64,000 nucleotides of DNA. Source: Epiperipatus broadwayi. Taxonomy: Eukaryota > Animalia > Onychophora. A program made the position numbers and the translations under genes. The notes under the pieces are model-generated. The model searched no databases. It was not told the origin of the DNA and saw nothing but the letters and a program-made list of their open reading frames with translations. The stretch covers positions 7,936,001 through 8,000,000 of the forward strand of contig JAQFVV010000005.1 in assembly GCA_028023455.1 (NCBI GenBank), in the 5' to 3' direction. Below are positions 4,600-31,865 of this stretch, piece by piece; the stretch's first letter is position 1; each line of letters opens with the position of its first letter.

Positions 4600-7500
4600 T
4601 TCAGTCCTGTAAAATTCACCAATGTCCAGAATTCCATATGTAGCCATTTGGGGACTAACATGTGATCTCTGAGGCAAAACCCTTTTAAAAGCTTTATAAA
4701 GTATTCCAGAGTCACTGAAAAAGTATTCCAGAGTCACTGAAAATGTATTTACATCTGACAGGCCAGATTGCAAAAGAAAAAACACAGATAGTCTGATTTT
4801 TTAAAAAATACCTGACTTTATGGCATTTTGTATAAATAGGACATCTCTGTGATCATGGGAGATCTTTTCATTGATGAACATCCTAACTTGACCAAGAGCT
4901 GGACTTGTATGGATGATATGAGTGATGGTTTCATCTGCCAAAGAACACAGCTAACCTTGGGGGTTGAGATTGTTGAAGCCTCTTTGCCACACAAGAAAGT
5001 GGTTCATTGATAGAGAAGAGAGGTTGCATTTCAGCAAGAAGTCTATGAATTTGGATTCTAGGAACCACCCTTTTGATTTCTTTATTAGTAGTTTATTAGT
5101 TAGTCCTAGAGCATTATGCAGTGGCCATAGATCTGGATGTTTCAGTTTGTATGTCTCCCAGTAAGTGGTCTTTCTTTCTAGAACAGGATCTATCAAATTT
5201 GTAGTGGAAGTCACATAGTCGGATAGATCAGTTAACCACTTGCTACATGAATGAGGAGGGGTGTCAGTGGGAGTTAAAGGCAGTGCTGAAGTCAGATTGG
5301 CATGTTTAAAGTGAGTCAACCTAACAACTGCAATTGCCTTCTGTAAATACAATATGAGCACTGTGTGGAGACCAAGCCCATTTAGTTGTCTCAGCATATG
5401 TGCTTTTCTTATGCTTATGGCAACCACCTTGGTCTTCCAAAACAGCTTAGAGGAAAGAGAGTTCAATGAGGTCTCGAAAGCCTTGGTAGGCTTTATTATG
5501 GGTAGAAAGTAGCTGAGCCTGGGGAAAACTAACATATTTAACAATGTAGTCCTGCCTGGCAGAGAGAAAGTAACGTTAGAGAGCTGTATAGTAATTTTCC
5601 TTGTTTTTTTCAAGGATAGAGCTCTGTAATTCCTTGGCCATGGCAAGTCTAGTCTTGGCCATGAGGAAGCCTAAAAACTTTTGAGGTTGGGCAGTAAACA
5701 TAGATGGTATTGTTTTGCCAGACCTAATGTTCCACATGGAAGATTTGTTGTAGTTTATCTTAGATTCAATTTCTTGGAGTATTTATTAATAATTTGCAAC
5801 AATGGTTGGAGATGACTTTGGTCAGGCAGGAAAATTGAGACATCATCTGTATAGGATATATAGTATACTTGACATTGTAAGGATGATATATAGATTCCAG
5901 GTAGTTTGCATTCGACTTCAATGAGAAAGAGATTTATGTATGTAATGAAGGATAGTGTTGTGAGAGGGGATCCCTGGGGAATGGACAGTTGTGGCTTAAA
6001 ACCATCTGATAGTCTCCCATCAAGGGTGGTAAAACAGGATCAATTTGAGAGATTTGCTATAATGTTTATATAGACTTCTGGAACCTGATAGTGTTTTGGG
6101 GTGTGTAGCAGGACAGATGGTATGACAGAGTCGAATGCCGAGGTTAAATCTAATTGAATCACTAGAGGCTTGGACTTTCTGTGTGTGTGTGTACATATTC
6201 TTTTGTGAGTAAAAAACACTCAATGGCATCTAGGGCTGAGATTCCCTTCTGAGCAAATTGGTGCCTGGAGATCTGGGGAAGTAGCTGATCTTGAAATTTG
6301 TCCTTTAATATTGATTCGATTGGTTTTATTAATAAAGGTATCATTGATATCGGATGCTGATTTAGCAAGCTGGATGAGTTTTCATTTTTTTAAGGAGTGG
6401 AACCAGTGCTACCGGGTACAAATCCAGGATGTGTTGAAAATCTTCAGCCAATGTGTCAATTATTCCATGAATAATGGAGGCTGTAATTTTACTAAGGTGT
6501 AATAGCACAAACCTAGGAATGCCATGGAGTCCTGGATGAGTGTTATCAGTATATGATTGGAGTTTTTGAACTATCTGCAGCTCAGTAACATCATGTACCA
6601 GACATTCATTTGAAGCCTTCCAATTTTTCCAGACACCAGACATTCATTTGAAGCCTTCCAATTTTTATGAGCTGTCACATATTGATCTGCTGTTTTAGTC
6701 CTGAAATACTTATGAATTTTTGTAAGCATCTCTGGTCCACTATATAGTTCTCCCTTGACCTGTGTCATGATTGGAGTTGGATGCTTTGAAGATCCAAGGG
6801 CCCACCTTATATAGCTTCAAGTCCAGTTATGCTGTGTGGACAGGAATATTTTGGATCTCTTTGTGGAGATGTACTGAGCAAGAACTCTTTGTTTTTCATG
6901 GTATTGTGTTTTTAAAGTCATTATTTCCTGAATGGTGGTATCAGTTGGTGAAAGTAAACTTAATCTGTTATTGATAGTGTCAAGTTCTTTTAGCATTTGA
7001 TTCAGCCCTTTAGTTTTTCTGGTATGCGAGTCTTTCAGCATGCTGAGTATTCCCACTAATGATGACCATGCCTGAAGAGGTGGAAGTGATAAAATGGCTA
7101 TTTTGTTGAACAAAATGTATGCCTCAGAGAACACTGACTCAGGAGTGGCAGATTTGTTTAGTAGACAAATTGTGCTATGGTAAGTTGAGTGTGTGGGTAC
7201 CTTGGGGTGAATCTGTAGTGAGATTAACAGAGCTAGATTATCTGAGAAGGGAACTAATTTTAACTTGGCATTTAGATTGTAATGAAGGTCAGGCATGTAT
7301 TAAAAAAAGTCTATCAGTGACCTTTTTTGCTGTGTGTAGAAAGAGAAGGCATCTGGAGAGGAAAATCCTTCTCCACACAGAAGAACTCTGTTGATGAAAT
7401 GTAGATATTTGCTATTGAAATTGCCATAGCTCATGTTAAAATCACCAAAACAGATTATTGGTCCAGGGTCTGAAGAAAGAAGAGCATTTATCTTGTATAT

Positions 7501-7902
7501 TACTGAGAGTATTATATTAGAGTCATTTTTGACATATAGGTATACCAAGTTAATTGAGAAATTACCCAGGCTGATATTTAATATTACTAACTCCTTGCTT
7601 AGATATAGCATTCTAAACTTATTATAATTTAGGTTTTTGTTAATCAAGAATGCTACTCCAGATGATGCAGATGTGGATGGAGCAAAGTGAAATATGCTGA
7701 AGTGTTGCATTAATTCATTTATTTTCGAGTTTGAGTTTATGTGCAGTTTCATCTCAGAGAGACAGGCAGTATGTATGTTTATCATCTCCAGCCATTTTTT
7801 AACAGCAAACACTTGATCTAGTGAGTTTAGTCCCCTTACATTTATTCCTCCAAATTTTAATAACATAGTTGGTAGTATGTTTAGGGAGTTTTTAAGTTTC
7901 AA
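4600..7902 (-). pseudogene. LINE ORF2 (APE endonuclease - reverse transcriptase), frameshifted
   Basis: APE motifs INVRGLN, CLSEMK, SGVAFL, CFGDFN, SLIDFF (ORF 7300..7902). RT motifs HPGLHGIP, HPISMIPL, PQGSPL (~5960..5980), YTDD (5842..5853). C-terminal ETITHIIHT zinc-finger remnant (~4900-4950). A 38-bp internal duplication (6598..6666) and other indels break the frame. Confidence 0.9.
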
Positions 7903-7904
7903 GG

Positions 7905-8240
7905 TCTAGTTGTTCTTCCATGTTGACAAAGTCCAGTCGATCTATTTGATCTTCTGATATGATTGAATCTTCTATTTGACAGCTGGCTACATTGGGATTT
8001 TTATTGGATTTAATTTGTTTTGTGTGATGATTTATTTCAGCTATGTGATGATTTATTTCAGCTATTGATGCTGCTAAAGTATTTCGTTCCAAAGAAAAGC
8101 TGTTGTGACAAGGTGTTGTTTCTGTTATTTTAGATCTTTTCTCTTTCTTCCTTTTCGGTTTCGGTGTTTTATCTGTGTTTTGGGGTTTTGGTGTTTTTTT
8201 TAGTGGGGGTAAATTTTGTTTTTGGGGTTTTGGGGGGGGG

Positions 8241-8276
<36 letters not shown>

Positions 8277-10278
8277 TGTTTTTGTGTTGGGGGGTGGGGT
8301 GTTGTTTTTTTTTTTTTTGTGGTTTTTGTTTTAACCAAGTTGGTTGTTTGTTTTTTCCCCCCATAGGGGGGGAGAGGTGTTTTTTTTTTTTTGTTTTTTG
8401 GGAAAAGAGTGTAGATTCTGGTATATTCCTTCTGGGTTCAGTTCTGTTTTCTTGTTTACTTTGCTGCATTGTATTTAAGTGTATTTCAGTTGTTGATTGG
8501 AATGTAGTGTCTATAGCTTTGGAATTATATAAAACTGTTGAGTGTGTTGAGCTTTGTGAAGTTATGTTATATTTATGGTATCTAGCTTTCTTCACATTGC
8601 AGATCTCACAAATTCTTTTTGGACAGGCTTTGAACAAGTGTGTGCACTCACCACAAAAGAAACATTATGGCTGGACACCCCAGATGGAGATGAAGATAGG
8701 ACACTTTCTTTCTTCCAGAGTTGAAGGTATATCTAGTAGAGTGTATTCTTTGTTTAATTTTAGTGTAAAAGCTGCATTATTGGAGGGCAGCTCAAGATCC
8801 CTTCTTTTTTCTGTAAGATATTTGAAACTGGTAATTGTTCCAAACTTGGCCAAAAGTCTTTGTAAGTCTGTTTTTGCGAAGTTGAAATAGCAATTTCTGG
8901 CTAGTCCATAAGCTACTCTTGGCCTGTTCATCTCAATTTTAATGAGTTATCGTTGTTTCAGGTAAAGCTGACTTCTCTTAAACAGTTCATTTTGGATGAG
9001 GTTAAAGAACTCAACTATAATATATCTTTGGTTCGGGTGATGGTAGATGCGTTTAATAGCATCTCCCAGCTGCTGAGTTTTAAGTAGCTCGAAAAAGTCG
9101 TCTGTTGGAAAAGGGAACAAGTTGCACTCGTTATTAGTTGTACTTAGAATAAGGGTATTTTCACTATGATAGTGTAAAAATGAGTCGAACAAGTGTGGTG
9201 GGATTCGCGAGTTGAATTCTAGATTTACTGCCTCATAATTATCAAGTGGGGTGAGTGAATTTAGATATTTCAGTTGGGTTGTGATTTCATCATTTATAGG
9301 TGTATTGGGTTGTGATTTCATCATTTATAGTTGTATTGTTATCATCTGTTACAAAGTCCAAGATGTTATAGTGCTGTTTTGGATCGTTAGTTGTTGAGAT
9401 TGTTACATTTGAAACTTTATTATTGAGTACTGCTGCATAGCTCTTACTGTTTGTTTGCTCTGAAACGTTCGATTTACTTTGAGATTGATTTAATAAACAG
9501 GTGTCTTTTTTTGATGCTGTATGGTCATTAACTTGTGTAACTTTGGATTTATTTTGATGTGTTTAGTGTTGGAAAATCATTGTTGTGAAGATTTTGTGCT
9601 CCTCGTAACATAGGCACTTTGTCGTGATTTAAATGTATTGTTTTATTTTTATCACTGTTTTGAACCTGAGTTTCTGCGATTAAATTTCCAATAGAGCGGT
9701 TTGTTTATTGACTTAATTGTATTAGATTTAGTTTTATTAGGTGTGTTTTTATTTAATTCTTTAGGGTCTCGCGTTAAAGCCTGATCCACCTCAGTTTTCT
9801 GGCTCCAAATAGTTTCGTTACGGTGAACGTTAGGTGCTTTCGGTGTAGTGCCACCTGCATTTTTATAGCTCACAGTAACTTCTTTTGCAATACCGATTTC
9901 TGTAATTAGTAGGTTATTTTTGGTGATATTTTCGTGTTTTACATTGTTTAAAGTTGTGATTTCATTGGCAAAGTTCGTTTTTGTTGAACTTGGAATAGCG
10001 ATCTTTTTATTAGAATTTGTTATCGCTGTAATTTTCTGTTTACAGCCAGTAGCGATTTCTTTTTGATTTGGCTGTTTAAATCCTGGCATATTGTTACTAG
10101 AATTATCTATTTGATCTGTTTTGCAGGGCTTAAATTGATACCAAGAGCTTACACTTTCCCTAAGTGGAGGGCTCGTGGAAAGCTTAGTTGAGTTGTCTCT
10201 AACATTACTCTCAGTTCTAGATCTAGTAAGGGGGGATGGCCCTAGACTTTGTTGTTCTAGAAAAGGTAGTCTTCTCAT
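7905..10278 (-). pseudogene. LINE ORF1 (low-complexity N-terminus, RRM-like region, CCHC knuckle), disrupted
   Basis: Fragments 9652..10278, 8947..9324, 8665..8931 and 8200..8637 join. Across a stop the frame reads WGVQP*CFFCGECTHLFKACPKRICEIC (C-x2-C-x4-H-x4-C), typical of L1/Tx1 ORF1. Confidence 0.8.
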
Positions 10279-20826: not shown

Positions 20827-23800
20827 TGAATTTGTGGCCACTTTCTTATTTATTTTTAATTCTATTAAAATTTTGCTTCATCTGATTATATTATTGCTGT
20901 ATTTGTATTAACTCCCCCATTAACTGGCTCATTATATGCATTTATCATGGATTTATCCACTTTACTTTTTCATTCTTTAGACTACAGGCTTTACTTCTTT
21001 TATTTTTCCCTATTTCATAAAAAAATATTTTGGGGTGAAAAAAAGAATGGAATCTATTTTTTCCCATCAACCATCACTTCTATTATGAACTGGATATGTT
21101 TTAGACAAGTTTACTTTTCTCATCTTACGTATTCTACATTTTTTTTTAAAAAAACTATAATTTATTTTTTAGTAATTAAATTGTTTCTGGAATCTATTTT
21201 TTCCCATCAACCATCACTTCTATTATGAACTGGATATGTTTGAGACAAGTTTACTTTTTTCATCTTACGTATTCTACATTTTTTTAAAAAAAACTATAAT
21301 TTATTTTTTAGTAATTAAATTGTTTCTTATATTATACAAGATACTTTCCATAACATTTTGAGATGTATTATTTTTCTCTTCTTCAGGTATGAATCAAACT
21401 TGAATTTTTAGATTCATGGATATTGAATTAAAATAAATATCCAAGTAACTAAACTATTCTGTCAAAGGCAACAATTAGTAAAAATTTCAAATATTTGTTC
21501 TCTTGATTTCTTTGCTCTGAGAGCAAGATTAATTGGTATCTTCTAGGCATTATGTAGTACTATTCTAGGTTGACTTACAGAGTTATTCAGCATTGTCATG
21601 CAAGCAGTTTCTTTGAATTTTTTTCTTTATACCTCTTCTCTATGAATATTTTTGTATTTCCCCTAATTGAATGTATTCCCATGTTTACACACATAGTCTG
21701 CTACTTTAGATACATCTTATGTCTCTTTTTTAATCATTACTTTGTGTTTTTTATATCACCTTTCAATGGACAATTGGTTTCACCAACATATATCTTTCCA
21801 CATTTATGTAATATTTCATATATCAGCTTTTGTTTTTAACAAATCAAGTTTAGATTTTGTAGATTTATAAAGTGTGATATAATTTTGAAAAACTATACTG
21901 ATGTTTATTGATTGCATATTTTTGTTAGTTTGTCTGCTATTTCTGGTATGTATAGATACACTACAGTACCAACAAATGTTTTCTTCTAACATTCTAATAT
22001 ATTTCCTATTTAAAGTTTCCTTAATGATGTTTGGATAACCAATATTTATGAGAGTTTATTCAATATAGAGCTTTCCTTTTTTCAAATCACAAGTTTCAAA
22101 ACAAACTTTTTTTATTCTGTTCCATAGCCACAGTGATAAAATAAATTCACATTTTATTTTTCTGGTGTAACTGGATATACATGCAATTTTTTTTCTGAGT
22201 TTGTGGATTTTTTGTAAATGTAGTTTTGATTTTGCCATCACAGAATCTTCTTACAAGTACATTTAAGATTGTCATTCATTGTTATTGTTCTGATTCTATT
22301 ATGAATTTTATTGATATGTAGTTGGTGTGCATCTAGAATATATGTAATTGTGCTTTATCCTGCTCCCATACAATACATGTATCATTAACATAGCATAAAC
22401 AAATTTTACATATATAGAGAGTAGTATTTATGGCACCTGTTTCAACTTATTACATATAAATGTTGCTAATCAGGGGTAGCAGTGGTCAACCCACAACCAT
22501 TACTTGATTTGTTTAGAAGAATTCCATGTTGTATTGAAAGTATGTTATTGTTTATTCAGAATGTTAATGATTTCATTATTTTTTCAATAGAAACAGTTGT
22601 TCTGGTTTATAAGCTATTATCATCATTTAGCCTTTTTTGCAATAAACAATGCTTTATCACATGTTACATTTGTGAATAAATATTCCATATCAAGCTTGCC
22701 CTTATGTCACTTATTTCAGTATTTATGTTCTTGATACTATTTAGAAATTCTCACAATAAACTATGTCTTATATATTAAAGAACTTAAACATTTGAGAATA
22801 AACATTGAATAGTTTTGGAAAGGTAAATTTTTAGAGCCAACTATAAGTTTTAATGGAACCATAAAGATGAGGAATTTTGTTGAACTACAGTGTTAATTTA
22901 CTTTTTCTGAATCAATGAAATATCTGTGGAGCATTGTATTAATGTTTGTAATTTTTTCCTGCACTTGATATCAGATTTGTAACCACTTTTTGATATTGAC
23001 TTTCTGTGAGAGGGTTTTGTATTTTGTAACATTGCAATTGTAGCATTGACAGCAGAGACTATGATTATGGATTTATCTAGTTTGAGAGATGTAACAGCTT
23101 TTTTTTCATCATAGGAAATATTTGATATTAGTTTTTATTGCCTATCAAGTATTATGTTTATTCTTTAGCATAATTTTGATGTTACTTTTAAGAGGAATAT
23201 TTGAGTGACTTCCCCAGTAGCAGCTATTATATCTAACAAAGTGATATTAGATGTTGTGATGGAACTGTTTAATCATTTTTCAACAAAGGAAATTTTAGCA
23301 TTTATTATATATTTAAAACTGACATTTTTAGCAGTTGAAGTTAGTAGCTTGTTTGATGGAGTCTGATTTTGATAGTCCCATGTAGGGTTACAAGTTATTT
23401 GTTTTGGTATTATTTTATAATTTCATATAATTAAGAGGTTTTTTACTACTTGAGAAACTTGTGTGAAGTAATCATTAGCAAATGTATTTTTAGAAAATAT
23501 TCTATATAATTAATAGAATGTAAAGTTTGATCCTTAGAAAAGTCTTGAGCATTTACTTTTTCTTTTAACAGGACCTTAGTTGCTCTCTGTATAAGTTTCA
23601 CAGTTCCATGAGAATGAATTAAAGATTTTAATTGCGAACCCTCAGAAACAATCATTTCATATTTATAAAAAAAGGTAATTAATTTTCTACTCTGGTTGGT
23701 TTCTGATATATTTTTTCATAATGTCTCATGATTGACATAATGTTAAAACCATGAAGAATATATAGTGTTTGCCTTAAGATTTGTCATGATGACATTTTAG

Positions 23801-23838
23801 TAATAATTTTATATTAAACTATTTTCATAATCTAATAT
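20827..23838 (-). mobile_element. Dead Penelope-like element, copy 2
   Basis: Colinear with 15191..18517 (roughly 80-85% identical by eye). G*PLLPLISNIYM (~22450..22500), YVND (22381..22392), LQKIHKL/VYRK region. Confidence 0.85.
21049..21328. repeat. 140-bp near-perfect tandem duplication inside Penelope copy 2
   Basis: ggaatctattttt...aaattgtttct starts at 21049 and 21189; single in copy 1. Confidence 0.95.
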
Positions 23839-25333
23839 TAAATATTGAATATCTTTAGCAAATTTAAATTTTATTTAAACTTTTTAAATACATTTCACTG
23901 TTAGCTTTAGTATTCAAAATGTTTTGGCATAAACTGACCTATAATGTAAATAGTTTAATATGAAGTTACTATTAAAATGCCATCATCACAAACCATTACA
24001 ATATAATTGTTGGGTTTAGCAATAACCGGTTGACAAAAAGAAAATTGAAACTGCACTTTTAAAAATGCATTATAGTAAAAAATAGAAAAAAACCCACAAA
24101 AATCTGTACTAATGAATTGTTGGTAAAATTAATGTGATTTTTAATGATTGTTTTAATCAAATTTTTATAACAATTTGTCTACTTTTTAATTTTAAAATGC
24201 ACTTGAAAATATTGGTAGCTTTAATCTTTAAGACAATCAATTATTGATCAAAGATTGTTTAGTCTTTTAAAGAGTTTAGAAAATATTCTTGAGGATACAA
24301 TTTATTTTAAATGTCAAAAACACCACAATTTAGAAAAATTGTATTTTTTCATCATAGAATTGATGTAAATTACCAATATCCTGAATTAAATATAAAAATG
24401 GTTATATGCATATATATTCTGTCTAAGTATTCTTTTTCCTCTTGAGCAATATTTTTGAATTTTTTGACTTTGGAAATTGAATGCTAACATTTTAAAATTT
24501 TCTATTTTTTTACTTCCACTTGTGTATTACTTAGTACATATTTAACAGTGAAGATGCAGTTGTTTTATTTTATCAAGATTTACTCATGTATCAAAATTAT
24601 TATTGTTACTTAAATAAATGCATTTAGTTATGGAAAACTGTTCACTATCTATTAGAAAAGTGGTGTTTTTTAATGATTTCATCGCTAAATCTCATTGAAC
24701 CTGTCTAAAACATTTATTAGATTTTGAAGATTTTCTTATATTCTTTTGATATTATGTTTATTTTTAAATGAAAATTTGTAGTTTTGAAGTTACAAATTTG
24801 ATTCTTCAGTTTGAGTTGTAAATAATTAATTTATTCTTACCTACTATAACTTTGAAAAAATGGTGGGTGAGAAAAAATTATTTCTCTTACCAAAATAATT
24901 TAATGACTACAAGTAAAATATCTTTCCTTTGAATATTATATTGCTTAAACTCTTATGTAATGAAATACTTTACAAAAGCCTTTTTTAAAATTAATTTAAT
25001 GTTTTAATATAAAGTTACAACACAACTTTTATAGAAAATGTCAAACTATAATAATCACCAACAGAATTAACAAACATTGACAAAATAGCTTTTTAAAGTT
25101 TTATAAATTTACATTTTGATTTTGAGCAATAATTAATTAAATTTTTATTTCCTTATTAATATATAAACATTTATGCATATTTTAAACACTCATGGATTTA
25201 AAATACATTTTTCACTAGGATTTTTATTTTTGATTGTTATCAAATTATTTTGCTGAAAATACACAAGTTGAAGCTGTAAGAAAATCATTGAACAGTCTTT
25301 CTGATCTTCCTTGTGTTCCTAAGTTTCATCACA

Positions 25334-28300
25334 TCAATTTATACTTTCAGTTTTTTCATCATCATAGAAAGACAATTTTTCAAAAAGTGGGCAAATGGAT
25401 GTTTTTAATATTGGGTTACTATAATGTAAAAAAAGTTCTACATTAGAACTATTTTCAATAAAGGCACGACTATGACCATAATCTAAATCTCTAAAATGTA
25501 AAGTATTATATTTTTCATGAGTGTTTATATTTATTAAACAATCATCTAAATTTATCTTAGAAACATTTTGTAACAAATTGTGTGTTACTACAAAATAATG
25601 TTCTAACATCCCATTGGCAAGTGAATCTTTTAACTTTTTGACAATGTCATTTTGATATCTTTTTCCTATATATTGACAATCAAGTGGTGTGGTTTCAAAA
25701 ATCCACAAACAACATGTTTTTATATAATAAGCCTGCATAATTTCATCTTTATAATAATATTTTATATAATTATAAATTTGTCTCTGGGAATAAGTCATGG
25801 CTTCATGCAAAAATTGTTCAGCAGTTGAAAAAGAAAGATAACCATCATAGATATGATTAGATTGACAAGACTTAAGCACCACCTTGTATCCATTTGTAAA
25901 AATTTTCTGAACCATTTCAGGACTGGGCCAATATCGTTTTCTTGAAGCCCATTCCCTGGCCTCATTTGGCCAGCCATCAATGCTTAAGAAAGGAACTATT
26001 TTAAGATTGTGGATCCATGGTTTCTGTTTATTAATAATATGATTTTTATAAGTCATTAATATATTTTTAAAATGTCTGCATAAAATAATATATTTATCTA
26101 CTGAAGGAATGTCATCATTGGTAGAGGAGTCATAATCTGTATCATTGTCACCAGAAATTTTAAAACATTTTACTTTCTGTGCATCTGTTTGGAAAGTGTT
26201 ATCTTGGATGCTCCTATATATTTTACAATTACAAACAATAGCTTCCAATTGTTTAATATTTACATTCATTTTACAGCTTAAAACATTACAAAAACATTCT
26301 ACATTATCATGGCAACTTTTTAACAGTGTAGCAAGATTTTTGTCCTTAAAAACTGTATTAAGTTGTGTCACCATTTCATATAATAGAACAAGTTTAACAA
26401 TATTTTTATAACACCTTTCTGTGTCATCTCCATTATAAAAACAAGCTTTTGCTTTAAGCAAAATTTTCTTTATTCTCTTTACACTATATTTGAGATTCCG
26501 TGCTATATTCTTTACATTTTTTGACACTTTTTCATTATGATTACTAGTTTCACTTTTATTACCTGGTTTATCAAGATTAGTAGTTAACTGTAACTTTTTA
26601 TTGTTACTGATATTGATTTTTCTTCTTTTTACAGTATGTTTATTATTACAAATAGATTTTTTATTTTTATGATCTGCATAGAATATAAATGCTATTAATT
26701 TCATAAAGTCATTTCTTGTTAAAAGGTTTATTAATGTCTGGAATTGATGTTTTTCATTTATTTGCTCACACAAAAATGAATTTTTATTTATATTATTTAA
26801 TGTACTTTTAAATTCTTTGCTTATGAAATTCAATATTGGTTTAAAATTCAAAGCAGTGGAGTTACTCTCCAGATGTTCTGAGATTGTTTCTTCTTCTGCA
26901 TTGTTTATACACATTTCCATATAATTTGCTATAAAGCAATTCTGAAAGTAAAATTTATCATTTTGAAAATTGGTTAGAAATTTTAAATTATCAATGATTT
27001 TTGCAACTTCATTTTTAAAATTAATTATAATAGGAACATTATTATAAAATTTTTCTGTGGTAATATGTTTTTGAATTTTTAGCATTTTATGTGCTGTAAT
27101 CATCAATAAAGTCAAAATTGGTTTATTATTGTTATCAAGAATTTGTTTATCAAAAAATTCATCATTGAGAAAAGAAATATTTAAAAAACAACTGTCTATT
27201 ATTTTAAACAGGTTCTTATAAATTTCTTCTTCTTTATAATCTAGTTCTATTAAAGTTAATGTTTTAGTTTCTTGAATAATTTTTTCTTTATGCAATGTAG
27301 TTTCCTTATTTATATTAATCTTAAATCCAATGGGAAATAAACCAAATGTTATTTTATCAGCTGGTCTTGAAAGATTGACATTTATATTTATGTTTTGTTT
27401 TAGAAATACTTCTATTTTTTTGCAAACAATATTTTTTATTTTTTCTGCATCATTTTTTATGCAAGTTAGGATAATATTAATGTAGTTAGTAATATATTTA
27501 AAACACACTTTTGTTTTGCCAAAAATCATAAAATATTTATTCATCAGAGTTTGAATGCTTTTACAATTTTCTAAATAGTAATTGTGTATTATATCTTTGA
27601 CATACGATTTGATGTTTTGTGGTAATGTAAGATGTTCATCTTTTGGATTTTCATCTGTAGCATCTTGAAGCATAATTGCAACATAACATTGCTGGAAAAT
27701 GTCTAATAATGTTTTAGTTACAGTATCAATAAATATTTTTTCAACATGAAATTTGATCTCATCACTATTGAATCTTCCATTCACATCTTTAACAAATAAT
27801 TTAAGATTATCTTTAATATTATCATCACTACTGTCATCTACATTCATCATTTCTTCATCATTTCCCATTCTTTTATTACTTTCTACAATTATTTTTTTTA
27901 CAATCACTTTTATACAGATCATCATGATATCTTTTTTTTGTTTTTTAATATAACCCATAATAAGCTGTATAATTTCAGCAGAAAATCGCTTTTGAATACT
28001 TTCTCTGTTTGTTTTCTTGTTATTTTTTTCATTCCATTTTATTTCCTTTACATACATATCTAGAATTGAAATAGATGATTGCTGAACTTTTATTGTTAAG
28101 AAGTCAATCAGTTTTCGTTTATAAAGTTCATAAAATTCTATTTTTTTTTTGTCCCATACTTCTTGAATAATAACTCTTAAATCACAATTCTTATAGTTTT
28201 GCATTTTATGAAATATTTTATCAGCCATAATATCAAATACCAATTTAATGGATTTTATTACATCCTTTCTGCTAATGAAATTTAACATTCTGTTAAAGAT

Positions 28301-29053
28301 ATCTATGATTTCTTTTTTAAAATTTTCTTTTACTTCTAAGGAGATGGTCTTAATGTTTATTATATCAAAATATTTAACTTTCTCATCATAAACAGTATTT
28401 AGTAAAGATTTCATTGACTTATTATACAATTCATAAAGATCATCATCAGTTGGAATATTATCACATTCCTCTACATCATGAAAAAAATTATATTTTTTAG
28501 GTACGGTTACAATATAATTTTTAGGCATTTCCACAAGCAATTGCTCTATTTCAACTTTATTATTAATGTTTTTCTCCAATCTCTGAAAAATATTAATCAT
28601 ATATTTTAGATAAGAACTATAAACATTATGAACAGAGTTATAGAATTGAATTGTATAACAAACTTGGTTATCCATTTGTGCTTGAACGAGTAAATGAGGT
28701 GAGAAAGGGTCCAATTGTTTTCTAACTTCATTGGTCAATACTTGTCGAAGTTTTTCTAGATCTAGCTCTGCTTCTGTTCCGTCCTGACATCTTATAAAGC
28801 TGCAGTTTTTACTAAAAGCAGTTATTCTTCCTTTAATCTTGACATGAGCTGGACTGTCAGGATTACTTTGTAAAGAATCTATTTGGAAAAATGGTTGTAT
28901 TTTATCATTAAGAGAGTATAGTATGTCCACATCAGACTTCCCCTCAGCATCAATTAAAAAAGAGCCATCGGGACAACTGCCTTGGAGACAAAATCCTTTA
29001 GTATTCAGGTTTTCATGATCTACTTCACACGGATAAAATTCTATGTGTTCCAT
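25334..29053 (-). CDS. Mab-21/cGAS-like receptor (cGLR) nucleotidyltransferase-family protein with ~900-aa insertion, 1239 aa
   Basis: Uninterrupted 3.7-kb ORF in very AT-rich DNA. N-terminal QGSCPDGSFLIDAEGKSDVDIL (G25-S26, D41-x-D43) and PAHVKIK. C-terminal Mab-21 signature KIVPFLSIDGWPNEAREWASRKRYWPS...LSFSTAE...YYIKTCCLWIFE...LEHYFVVTHNLL. Start context aaaaatATGG with an in-frame stop upstream. Confidence 0.9.
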   Translation of the reverse strand: MEHIEFYPCEVDHENLNTKGFCLQGSCPDGSFLIDAEGKSDVDILYSLNDKIQPFFQIDSLQSNPDSPAHVKIKGRITAFSKNCSFIRCQDGTEAELDLEKLRQVLTNEVRKQLDPFSPHLLVQAQMDNQVCYTIQFYNSVHNVYSSYLKYMINIFQRLEKNINNKVEIEQLLVEMPKNYIVTVPKKYNFFHDVEECDNIPTDDDLYELYNKSMKSLLNTVYDEKVKYFDIINIKTISLEVKENFKKEIIDIFNRMLNFISRKDVIKSIKLVFDIMADKIFHKMQNYKNCDLRVIIQEVWDKKKIEFYELYKRKLIDFLTIKVQQSSISILDMYVKEIKWNEKNNKKTNRESIQKRFSAEIIQLIMGYIKKQKKDIMMICIKVIVKKIIVESNKRMGNDEEMMNVDDSSDDNIKDNLKLFVKDVNGRFNSDEIKFHVEKIFIDTVTKTLLDIFQQCYVAIMLQDATDENPKDEHLTLPQNIKSYVKDIIHNYYLENCKSIQTLMNKYFMIFGKTKVCFKYITNYINIILTCIKNDAEKIKNIVCKKIEVFLKQNININVNLSRPADKITFGLFPIGFKININKETTLHKEKIIQETKTLTLIELDYKEEEIYKNLFKIIDSCFLNISFLNDEFFDKQILDNNNKPILTLLMITAHKMLKIQKHITTEKFYNNVPIIINFKNEVAKIIDNLKFLTNFQNDKFYFQNCFIANYMEMCINNAEEETISEHLESNSTALNFKPILNFISKEFKSTLNNINKNSFLCEQINEKHQFQTLINLLTRNDFMKLIAFIFYADHKNKKSICNNKHTVKRRKINISNNKKLQLTTNLDKPGNKSETSNHNEKVSKNVKNIARNLKYSVKRIKKILLKAKACFYNGDDTERCYKNIVKLVLLYEMVTQLNTVFKDKNLATLLKSCHDNVECFCNVLSCKMNVNIKQLEAIVCNCKIYRSIQDNTFQTDAQKVKCFKISGDNDTDYDSSTNDDIPSVDKYIILCRHFKNILMTYKNHIINKQKPWIHNLKIVPFLSIDGWPNEAREWASRKRYWPSPEMVQKIFTNGYKVVLKSCQSNHIYDGYLSFSTAEQFLHEAMTYSQRQIYNYIKYYYKDEIMQAYYIKTCCLWIFETTPLDCQYIGKRYQNDIVKKLKDSLANGMLEHYFVVTHNLLQNVSKINLDDCLININTHEKYNTLHFRDLDYGHSRAFIENSSNVELFLHYSNPILKTSICPLFEKLSFYDDEKTESIN

Positions 29054-29111
29054 ATTTTTTATAATTGCTTTTAATTATTTGCACATCCAATTTTGTAATC
29101 CAAATAGTAAT

Positions 29112-29130
29112 CTATAAACAAAAACAAATA
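29112..29130 (-). promoter_or_regulatory. Candidate 3' splice acceptor for a 5'-UTR intron of the cGLR gene
   Basis: Minus strand tttgtttttgtttatag ends 58 nt upstream of the ATG. Confidence 0.4.
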
Positions 29131-29202
29131 TTGTTACCCGTTTCACTTAGTTTTGCTGATTATTATTAATTTATTGCAAAAGTTTCTACGTTTTTGAATT
29201 AG

Positions 29203-29774
29203 AAATAATCAGCATTAAGCTATTGAACATGCGCTTTGTAGATTTTAAACAATAAATGAATACTCCCACTTCAAATACAAGATAAGTCTTTAGAAAAGAT
29301 AGAATGAATCCATCCAACTTTTCGAACCCAAACGCTTTTGTATGAGCAAATATCAAGTATTTGAAAGTGAGAGCATGAAGATATTAAACAAATACTTTAA
29401 ATTACTTATCTTTATTATTTATATACATCGCGCTATATAAAATATATTGTTTATATACATTTAATTTCAAATGAAACTGACGTATCGTAAATTCTAGTAA
29501 ATTTCGCCAGTGTCATTCATTCAAGCATGTAAAAGTAATTAAAGTGTTTCTTTAATATCTTCATGTTCTCACTTTCAAATACTTTAGATTTGCCCATACA
29601 TAAGCGTTTGGGTTCGAAAAGATAGATGGATTCATTCTATCTTTTTTAAAGACTTATCTTGTGTTTGAAGTGGGAGTATTCATTTATTGTTTAAAATTTA
29701 CAAAGCGCATGTGCAATAACTTAAATGCTGATTATTTATATTACAGTTTATATACATCGCGCTATATAAAATAA
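29203..29774. repeat. 329-bp repeat family: inverted 205-bp arm plus ~1.7 direct units, just upstream of the cGLR ORF
   Basis: Inverted arms 29203..29407 and 29533..29737. Tail tttatatacatcgcgctatataaaatat repeated at 29418 and 29747 (period 329). Internal 10-bp stem-loop aaaagataga/tctatctttt. Confidence 0.9.
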
Positions 29775-31013
29775 ATTGTTTGTTTTTGAATTAGATAAAC
29801 AATCACGTGATCTAATATAGATAACAATTGCTGATACATTACTTTAAAGTTTCACGTTTTAATATTTCAAAATTATATAGTATATTCAAGAGAGTTGTGC
29901 AATTTTTTTAAATTATTACCTTGGAATCAAATTTTAAAACGCATGATTTATGAAGTTAACGTAATGACTATTTTAAGAGATACCGAAAGTGAAAAAAGTC
30001 AGTCTTAAAACTATAAATTCTCTCTTATTTTTTATGTTAGCAAGGTCAAAATAGAAATCAAATTCATTGGTTTGCTTTATTTTTAATCACAAAATATTTC
30101 ATTCACTGTGGTTTTGAAAATGTTGATTAAAATATTTTTAATAGATGCATTTTTTAACTTTTAAAAGTAAGAAAAATTTTTTTCTTAATGGCATTAACTG
30201 TAACTATTGAAAAATTATTAAGTTTACCATTTGTTATGATGAATCATTTGATCTATATTTTGAATATTATTCATGGATATTATTGTTATATATTCTACTA
30301 GAGGCAGCCAATAAAAGTTTTAAACGAGGATAATTTATTAGAAGTATCGCCGGTAAAAAAAAACTATTGTTTTACCGGCATATAGGACGCAACAGCGTAT
30401 AAGACAAACACCCTTTTTTATACACATTTTTTTTTTTAAAAAAAAATTCTATATTTTTACTTGAATTTTTATAATGATTTACTATGCTAATTTTATAGTT
30501 ATTTATGTCTACAAAAATGTAACTAGGGAGCACTATAATTAAGTACGTTTTAATCTCCAACCTCGAAACCTAGAAATTCATTTCCAGAGCTAAACATTTG
30601 AAAGATTGTCTTTTTTCACTGTATACTATTTATCCTGTGGATAGACTTATATTTTTGAAGGACTTTTCATATATATTTTAACCATTTAATTTTAAAATAT
30701 TATTTTAAAAATTATAAGAGTATTAAGTTATTTTAAATGTTTTGTTCTGATACTGATATGATTATGAGAATATGTTTGTATAGCTATATATAGCTTACAT
30801 GCATATTTATTTATATAATTGTGTATTTATAAATATTTTTTTTTTTTGTTTTGTAAAAGGATAATATGCATGCATGCTTATATACATGTTAATTGTTTTA
30901 GTAAATTATATAAATGTTTATTAGTATTTGAAATGCAGGCATTCTTCATATACCTGCCGCTTAATTGTAAGTATACGGGATTTGAGCTCAGACTTTCAAG
31001 CATCCTTCAATGA

Positions 31014-31865
31014 ACCATACTATCTCATACTACTGATACACATGACCACACACATGTAGAAAAGATAAATAGTTACTGATGTACATATTTTGTGCTGAAC
31101 CAGCACTCATCAGTTGGTCCAGATTATCTCCCACACATATAAATAATCAGTGCTCAGTTTATATTAGGATAGAAAATCATAATGGACAGACTTCAAATAC
31201 ATTCCAACTCTTCAGCCATCCATACTAATGAAAATCTGAGAATTTAAGCACTAATATATGACAAACATTTACATATCAGATAATAAAATTAATTCCTAAA
31301 TGCTAAAATTCTTTATGCAGCAATTCTTATCAATCAACCAACTGGTGTTTTTTGTGTTAAAAAAATATGAGATTTTTATCAGTTGGTTGATTGATAAGAA
31401 TTGTTGTGTAATGAATTTTAGCTTATAGGAATTAATTTTGTTATCTGATATTTAATGATTTGTAATATTTTAGTCTTTAAGTTCTGGAAATAGCCATTTT
31501 GCTGTTCTTTCTGATGAAAATCAGTCTGCTGTTTGAAATATTAAAGCAGCTTTATAGAGAAGTAATTATGTGTTTTTATTAGTATTTATATATATATTTA
31601 AAGGAGATTCAAACCCACATTCATTCCATCTTATAGAACTCATACACATAACCACATACATACAAAAAAAATAAATGATGATCAACATACATATTTCATG
31701 CTGAATCAGCAGTCATCATTTGGGCTGAATTATTATCTCTTACATATATATATAATTAGTGCTCAGTTTATATTAGGATAGCAAATCTTTAAACTTTAAT
31801 GGATAGGCTTTAATACTCTCCACCCTCCAACACTTCAACCATCCATATAATTGAAAATCTGATGA
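31014..31865 (-). repeat. Two diverged copies (31014..31245, 31621..31865) of a repeat carrying CpG-decayed hammerhead motifs (family 5)
   Basis: Minus-strand motifs CCAA CTGATGA GTGCT GGTTC AGCAC AAAA TATGTA.. (31076..31117) and CCAA ATGATGA CTGCT GATTC AGCAT GAAA TATGTA TG TTGA (31682..31723). Flanking blocks (agtgctcagtttatattaggatag) also shared. Partial inverted copy at ~32003..32068. Confidence 0.75.
31247..31477. repeat. MITE-like foldback, ~98-bp arms, ~35-nt spacer
   Basis: Core arms 31274..31344 and 31380..31450 are reverse complements with few mismatches (cagttggttgattgataagaatt...). Confidence 0.85.

Follow-up and report, generated by a model that had tools for sequence, protein, structure and literature searches.

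We identified a single-exon gene of the Mab-21 family in a 64,000-nucleotide stretch of the genome of the onychophoran Epiperipatus broadwayi (GenBank assembly GCA_028023455.1, contig JAQFVV010000005.1, positions 7,936,001 to 8,000,000), here referred to as the window. The gene consists of an open reading frame (ORF) of 1239 codons on the minus strand, located in DNA of about 24% GC (23% to 27% GC in the surroundings), and it was present exactly as described in an earlier reading of the window made from the letters alone, here called the sequence-only reading. The ORF contained no internal stop codons, as compared with 64 to 199 stops in the other 5 frames over the same span, and the probability of 1239 stop-free codons given the base composition alone is about 1e-54. 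Furthermore, the codon-position composition was coding-like over the entire ORF, including its middle part. An in-frame stop codon was noted 3 codons 5' of the ATG, which is therefore the start of the protein. No further copy or fragment of the protein was found in the window with tblastn, and no Rfam family matched in the segment from 23000 to 31500. The features of the gene are listed in the table.

Table. Features of the Mab-21 family gene, with positions in the window and the evidence for each
Feature	Positions	Strand	Evidence
Single-exon ORF, 1239 aa, Mab-21 family	25334..29053	-	No internal stops, coding-type codon-position composition, upstream in-frame stop
Probable 5' untranslated region	29054..29290	-	X5 record 15 colinear over 27837-29290; contig end within upstream fold-back repeat
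Predicted first nucleotidyltransferase core half, aa ~20-135: LQGS and DVD strands, then PAHVKIKG	28649..28996	-	hhalign E 1.3e-4, weak phmmer matches, AlphaFold2 pLDDT 73-91
G25-S26 within LQGS, the activation-loop motif h[QT]GS	28976..28981	-	Invariant columns in alignment A1
D41-V-D43, catalytic acids one and two	28925..28933	-	Nearly invariant columns in A1
Insert of ~870 aa (aa ~141-1010), all-alpha by prediction, rich in K/N/I and with very few Pro/Gly	26024..28633	-	Homology searches, AlphaFold2, composition
Basic, hydrophobic-poor stretch of the insert, aa ~795-850, including KHTVKRRKINI	26504..26671	-	Hydrophobic fraction 0.22, net charge +9 (aa 801-850)
Predicted second nucleotidyltransferase core half and Mab-21_C helix bundle, aa ~1012-1175	25529..26020	-	Pfam, library matches, hhalign E 1.9e-17, pLDDT 72-97
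Lys1018 in place of the third catalytic Asp	26000..26002	-	Three independent alignments
Probable 3' untranslated region	25008..25333	-	X5 contig ends at 25008 beside adapter sequence; TATAAA ~20 nt upstream

Judged from their sequences, 2 widely separated segments of the protein are the halves of a Mab-21/cGAS-family nucleotidyltransferase (NTase) core. The second half was recognized by Pfam, with PF03281 (Mab-21) matching residues 1017 to 1080 at 24.3 bits against a gathering cut-off of 24.1, over profile positions 124 to 192 of 197 only, and PF20266 (Mab-21_C) matching residues 1105 to 1175 at 32.7 bits (cut-off 24.1). The first half lies outside the Pfam match and was detected only by hhalign with close relatives. 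An exhaustive HMMER search with residues 1 to 1200 against 1.84 billion representatives yielded 430 matches, the best 150 of which were all located on the C-terminal half (residues ~1000-1200). Many relatives also gave a weak second phmmer match, in which residues ~20-85 of the query aligned with their own residues ~40-125. A profile of 33 relatives aligned with the C-terminal half at an E-value of 1.9e-17 and with the N-terminal half at 1.3e-4 (hhalign), placing residues 20 to 85 on family columns 64 to 128 in the right register. The top relatives with solved structures in a sequence search of the PDB were human MB21D2 (7lt1) and the coral cGAS-like receptor (cGLR) Sp-cGLR1 (8gjy). In an alignment of the query with 49 relatives (A1), G25-S26 and D41-V-D43 were found in invariant or nearly invariant columns, just as the sequence-only reading had placed a GS...DxD motif at residues 25 to 43; its claim that the next core strand is not reached until residue ~1018 agrees with the start of the Pfam Mab-21 match.

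The segment between the halves had been described as a motif-free and probably helical insertion of about 900 residues, rich in Lys, Asn, and Ile. This description was largely borne out, although the extent is better given as about 870 residues since the first half reaches residue ~135. The patches DDSSDD, KHTVKRRKINI, and DNDTDYDSSTNDD were all located in the translation of the insert, and no known domain was identified in it. A word-indexed search with the full-length query gave no match, the 2 halves of the insert searched separately gave no homologue, and Pfam searches of 3 insert pieces at E-values up to 10 returned noise only. An insert homologue was not present among the best 150 of the 430 HMMER matches from the 1.84 billion representatives, and for the insert the PDB sequence search returned designed helical repeats only, with weak E-values. 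The comparison with the clade profile of the relatives gave an hhalign E-value of 0.6 and no sequence similarity, and no internal repeats were found by self-BLAST. The ESM Atlas did return Mab-21 clusters for the insert (0.83 to 0.84), but these had few features in common and were judged to represent leakage from the whole-protein context and not evidence.

In composition, the insert was not of low complexity (local entropy of 3.3 to 3.6 bits, compared with 3.7 bits in the core), and its hydrophobic fraction ranged from 0.36 to 0.54, while Pro and Gly together numbered only 0 to 2 in almost all blocks of 50 residues. The GC content of its first codon positions (GC1) was 0.32, compared with 0.19 at the second and third positions (GC2 and GC3), T was depleted at first positions, and both GC1 and GC2 were below the values of the flanking core. 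The FYMINK residues made up 0.50 and the GARP residues 0.07 of the insert, compared with 0.27 and 0.17 in the N-terminal core, and the composition of the insert is strongly AT-driven. An AlphaFold2 model of residues 1 to 1200, built from an alignment of 50 sequences, showed long helices in the insert with predicted local distance difference test (pLDDT) values mostly between 25 and 60, and up to 79 near residues 330 to 350. Residues 802 to 839 were modelled without secondary structure at pLDDT 25 to 30, and the stretch from residue ~795 to ~850 is probably disordered.

In the same model, pLDDT values were 73 to 91 for residues 21 to 80, 53 to 65 for residues 81 to 110, and 72 to 97 for residues 1011 to 1170. 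VIA-align placed 254 to 271 model residues, taken from the range 3 to 1200, on cGAS chains with Z-scores of 18 to 19, and the 2 halves are therefore predicted to reassemble into one bilobed cGAS-like fold, which was the question that the sequence-only reading had put to structure prediction. For mouse cGAS, 267 of 355 residues were aligned with the predicted model (Z 19). Foldseek, which searches locally, detected the C-terminal half alone. Because the aligned part of mouse cGAS begins at residue 179, the N-terminal spine helix has no counterpart in the query, in which only 24 residues precede the GS motif, as compared with about 55 residues and 2 helices in the relatives.

The closest relatives belong to an uncharacterized clade of Mab-21 proteins of 570 to 990 amino acids, exemplified by KAK3755580 from the sea anemone Actinostola sp. 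(P0002) and by a protein of 900 amino acids from ENA (P0013). Like the query, these proteins contain the GS, G-DVD, and PxHV[RK]IKG motifs, their C-terminal halves are 31% to 39% identical to that of the query over about 150 residues, and they are encoded by single-exon genes, which in this clade occur in clusters. We counted the spacing between the GS motif and the third Asp in the 53 relatives in which both motifs could be located and found it to range from 128 to 483 residues, with a median of 371, as compared with 993 in the query. In human cGAS, the corresponding spacing is about 107. According to A1 and the N- and C-terminal alignments, the insertion site in the query is the beta-hairpin between the SPAxTL strand and the strand of the third Asp, as in the relatives, which likewise have helices at the start and end of the insertion. 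As aligned, the query insert is thus the extreme of a clade-wide variable insert at this hairpin. The clade differs from the query in that its insert is partly disordered, with a spacing of at most 483, whereas the ~870 residues of the query insert show no sequence similarity to it. Furthermore, the clade has kept the third Asp and the N-terminal spine helix, and it carries a C-terminal helical extension of about 250 residues that is absent in the query.

P0013 is encoded by one ORF of 2.7 kb, which has other Mab-21 genes as its neighbours on an ENA contig of 1.1 Mb. In its model (mean pLDDT 72), the SPAITLNF strand is followed by a four-helix subdomain (residues 194-290), a disordered linker of 135 residues, 2 return helices, and the third-Asp strand. 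Its structural neighbours in AlphaFold DB were mostly unnamed or generically named Mab-21 proteins. It was also noted that P0013 belongs to a tandem cluster in which at least 3 Mab-21 genes, each called as a single ORF, lie within 9 kb and on both strands (ENA ERZ25073751, L001 1-8703). Two other long relatives, P0035 and P0052 (1131 to 1213 amino acids), were considered as candidates for the same architecture but were rejected, as they contain N-terminal Neuralized/SPRY domains fused before a complete Mab-21 core and not insertions. These domain types are not among the ANK, TPR, and death-domain fusions that the cGLR census names (PMC9980059).

The extra domains described in cGLRs are such terminal fusions with ANK, TPR, or death domains, and not insertions in the core (PMC9980059). 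The published census demands a spacing of 50 to 90 residues and names only domain fusions (PMC9980059). The insert-bearing clade seems to be undescribed. The architecture that the sequence-only reading had called possibly undescribed is nevertheless not wholly new, since the nearest clade already shows an enlargement of this hairpin.

The published active-site criterion for cGLRs is h[QT]GS [X8-20] [DE]h[DE]h [X50-90] h[DE]h (PMC9980059). The query follows the first part of this pattern, with L-Q-G25-S26 and D41-V-D43-I separated by 14 residues, whereas the third acid is replaced by L-K1018-I at the aligned position, 974 residues after D43-I44. The strand NLKIVPF of the query aligned with G.DFVPA of the relatives, in which the Asp is invariant in alignment A2 and nearly invariant in A1, and Lys1018 was located opposite D207 of MB21D2 (7lt1) and, according to hhalign, opposite D480 of P0013. 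On these alignments and by the published criteria, the query lacks the complete active site of a cGLR. A canonical cGLR enzyme is unlikely, since the third Asp is replaced by Lys1018 and the N-terminal spine helix is absent.

Like cGAS, Sp-cGLR1 (8gjy), and Cv-cGLR1 (8gjw), the query is predicted to consist of a bilobed NTase and a helix bundle (VIA-align Z 18-19 over 254-271 residues, Foldseek E 1.5e-7), and it shares their GS and [DE]h[DE] motifs. However, cGAS and the active cGLRs have an essential third Asp located 50 to 90 residues after the second, whereas the query lacks both the third acid and the spine helix. The orphan cGLR human MB21D2 has the same fold and was the best solved-structure sequence match to the C-terminal half of the query (E 1.9e-7), but it is compact (464-residue chain in 7lt1) and has a complete triad. 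In its crystal, 61 residues were unresolved and omitted from the published alignment, and neither an activating ligand nor an activity was detected (PMC8410604). Mab21L1 (5eog/5eom) also has the same fold (Foldseek E 7.6e-7), and resembles the query in its incomplete or unproven active site and in its non-enzymatic role, a role that we propose for the query. Mab21L1 is, however, compact (~360 amino acids), highly conserved, and developmental, whereas the query is lineage-specific and contains a huge orphan insert.

To these protein data, we added 2 sequencing runs: X1, which is DNA, and X5, which comes from a multi-species study and is labelled "RNA?", its type being a guess. Of the words sampled from the gene, half were present in X5, and the proportion was the same for the insert alone. 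The X5 contigs were colinear with the window at 27837-29290, 27193-27866, 26671-26985, 26249-26396, and 25008-25447, with no splice joints, and the first of these spans the 5' untranslated region, the N-terminal core, and 400 codons of the insert. On the single-copy flanks, the X5 depth was near zero at 24400-24972 and zero at 29939-30100. The gene is probably transcribed, and the coverage would fit a transcript of about 4.3 kb. The colinear contigs without joints are evidence against splicing-out of the insert, which is retained in these probable RNA contigs, apart from 3 uncovered gaps.

The sequences in X5 and X1 differed from the window at 1% to 2% of sites. The unique differences in the insert comprised 15 nonsynonymous and 4 synonymous changes, compared with a neutral ratio of 4.3:1 (p 0.77), whereas those in the N-terminal core were 7 and 7 (p 0.05 against neutral). 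None of the differences created a stop codon, but since only about 5% of substitutions would do so, this is not significant. These counts hint that the amino-acid sequence of the insert is little constrained, although the data are too few to settle the matter; neutral evolution of the insert had been named in the sequence-only reading as an outcome that would count against it, and the pattern is neutral-like but sparse.

It was also noted that X5 contains a divergent allele at 28885-28972 (residues 28 to 57), in which 13 substitutions are combined with three deletions of 1 nt each (net one codon) inside 90 nt. In this allele, the loop between GS and DVD is changed from IDAEG to TSKN, while SDVDILY is unchanged, with V42 and D43 altered synonymously only. 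The cluster has the appearance of gene conversion from a paralogue or of a haplotype of great age.

The surroundings of the gene were fairly described as dead repeats in the sequence-only reading. A fold-back repeat is located 160 nt upstream of the ATG, with arms at 29215-29400 and 29539-29724 of 186 nt each that are 92% complementary and 138 nt apart, and no Rfam family matched in 29215-29724. The summed X1 contig depth on this repeat was 17,000 to 57,000, compared with about 30 to 170 over the gene, and it is therefore an element of very high copy number. In X5, the probable transcript contig ends at 29290, within the proximal arm, and the repeat may supply the promoter or the 5' end of the gene. 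Short ORFs were located at 4951-10278 in an island of 34% to 37% GC, one of which, at 7300-7902 on the minus strand, matched the AP-endonuclease family Exo_endo_phos with an E-value of 6.5e-5, just under the Pfam cut-off, and therefore represents a decayed LINE-type retrotransposon.

The interpretation that we favour, and to which we give slightly better than an even chance, is that the gene is an extreme case within the insert-bearing Mab-21 clade, having lost canonical catalysis and serving, if anything, as a scaffold. It would be a single-exon gene of the Mab-21/cGAS-like family that is restricted to its lineage and probably transcribed, with an NTase fold rebuilt from residues ~20-135 and ~1012-1175. 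The hairpin turn before the third catalytic strand, which makes a helical-plus-disordered excursion in the nearest clade, would have grown here from the ancestral insert of the clade to a mostly alpha-helical module of about 870 residues. With a Lys in place of the third metal-binding acid and no N-terminal spine helix, the canonical two-metal reaction yielding a nucleotide second messenger would most likely be absent. By analogy with Mab21L1 and MiD49/51, the protein is probably a pseudo-enzyme scaffold or adaptor, if it is functional at all, and the insert may provide an interaction surface under weak sequence constraint. The sequence-only reading had proposed a cGLR with an inserted sensor module; what stands of this is a Mab-21/cGAS-fold protein whose core is split by a very large coding insertion, while Lys1018, the spacing of 974 residues, and the missing spine helix speak against the receptor.

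Several points weigh against the interpretation as a catalytically disabled scaffold. The model of the insert is of low confidence, so that both the fold drawn for it and its packing against the core are tentative. The X5 contigs leave gaps at 25448-26248, 26397-26670, and 26986-27192, from a library whose type is a guess, and the polymorphism counts are small, with one cluster possibly representing a single gene-conversion event. Finally, the GS and DVD motifs are retained and the second allele alters V42 and D43 only synonymously. This pattern hints that the nucleotide-binding side is constrained, and a non-canonical activity would still be conceivable.

A serious rival, which we consider possible although unlikely, is that the gene is a young or decaying lineage-specific copy under relaxed selection, and that the insert is a functionless expansion driven by AT mutation and tolerated in a surface hairpin. 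A parallel for such an expansion is provided by Plasmodium proteins in which conserved domains contain Asn/Lys-rich inserts. This would agree with the match of the insert variants to the neutral ratio, with the FYMINK and GARP fractions and the low GC1 and GC2 of the insert relative to the core, with the failure of every search to find an insert homologue, and with the lost catalytic residue. The same site is also partly disordered and variable in length in the relatives. However, 870 codons have remained open although a stop would result from about 5% of single-base changes there, the insert has the entropy and hydrophobicity of a folded helical protein and no repeats, and the gene is apparently transcribed.

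It is quite improbable, in our view, that the protein is an active cGAS-like receptor that still makes a nucleotide signal, with the insert as a ligand-sensing or regulatory module beside the active site. The h[QT]GS and [DE]h[DE]h motifs are intact and correctly spaced, the divergent allele changes V42 and D43 synonymously only, and the nearest relatives have a full triad (D480 is invariant in A2) along with a structured subdomain of helices where the query has its insert. Moreover, the insert resembles a folded helical protein rather than low-complexity sequence, and its basic stretch could bind nucleic acid. Nevertheless, Lys1018 replaces the third acid in every alignment, the spine helix is absent, the query departs from the published cGLR pattern in both the spacing and the third acid (PMC9980059), and the insert is neutral-like in polymorphism and strongly AT-driven in composition. 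The idea that splicing removes the middle, as an intron or foreign insertion, to leave a compact Mab-21 protein is barely credible, despite the 3 insert stretches uncovered by X5 contigs and the guessed run type, as a stop-free 2.6-kb intron in DNA of 23% GC is not believable, X5 is colinear without a joint over the boundary between the N-terminal core and the insert (27837-29290) and over most of the insert, the relatives have their inserts at the corresponding place within single ORFs, and Lys1018 would remain after removal of residues 141 to 1010.

A more far-reaching possibility, which we regard as rather improbable, is that the insert is a folded functional module, maybe replacing the spine helix, that makes the Mab-21 core a new type of receptor or adaptor kept in several paralogues, and that it stands beside a clade with intact triads and a structured insert next to the third Asp that was missed by the X50-90 rule of the census.

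The cGAS-like receptors are major and fast-diversifying innate immune sensors of animals, in which the known variation consists of surface remodelling and terminal domain fusions. The gene described here seems to be catalytically disabled, and its own importance is therefore modest unless the insert is functional. As predicted here, the hairpin beside the third catalytic residue can take very large insertions without breaking the fold, and an uncharacterized Mab-21 clade routinely uses this insertion site. Since that clade is not covered by the motif spacing on which the cataloguing of cGLRs was based, it may hide enzymes.

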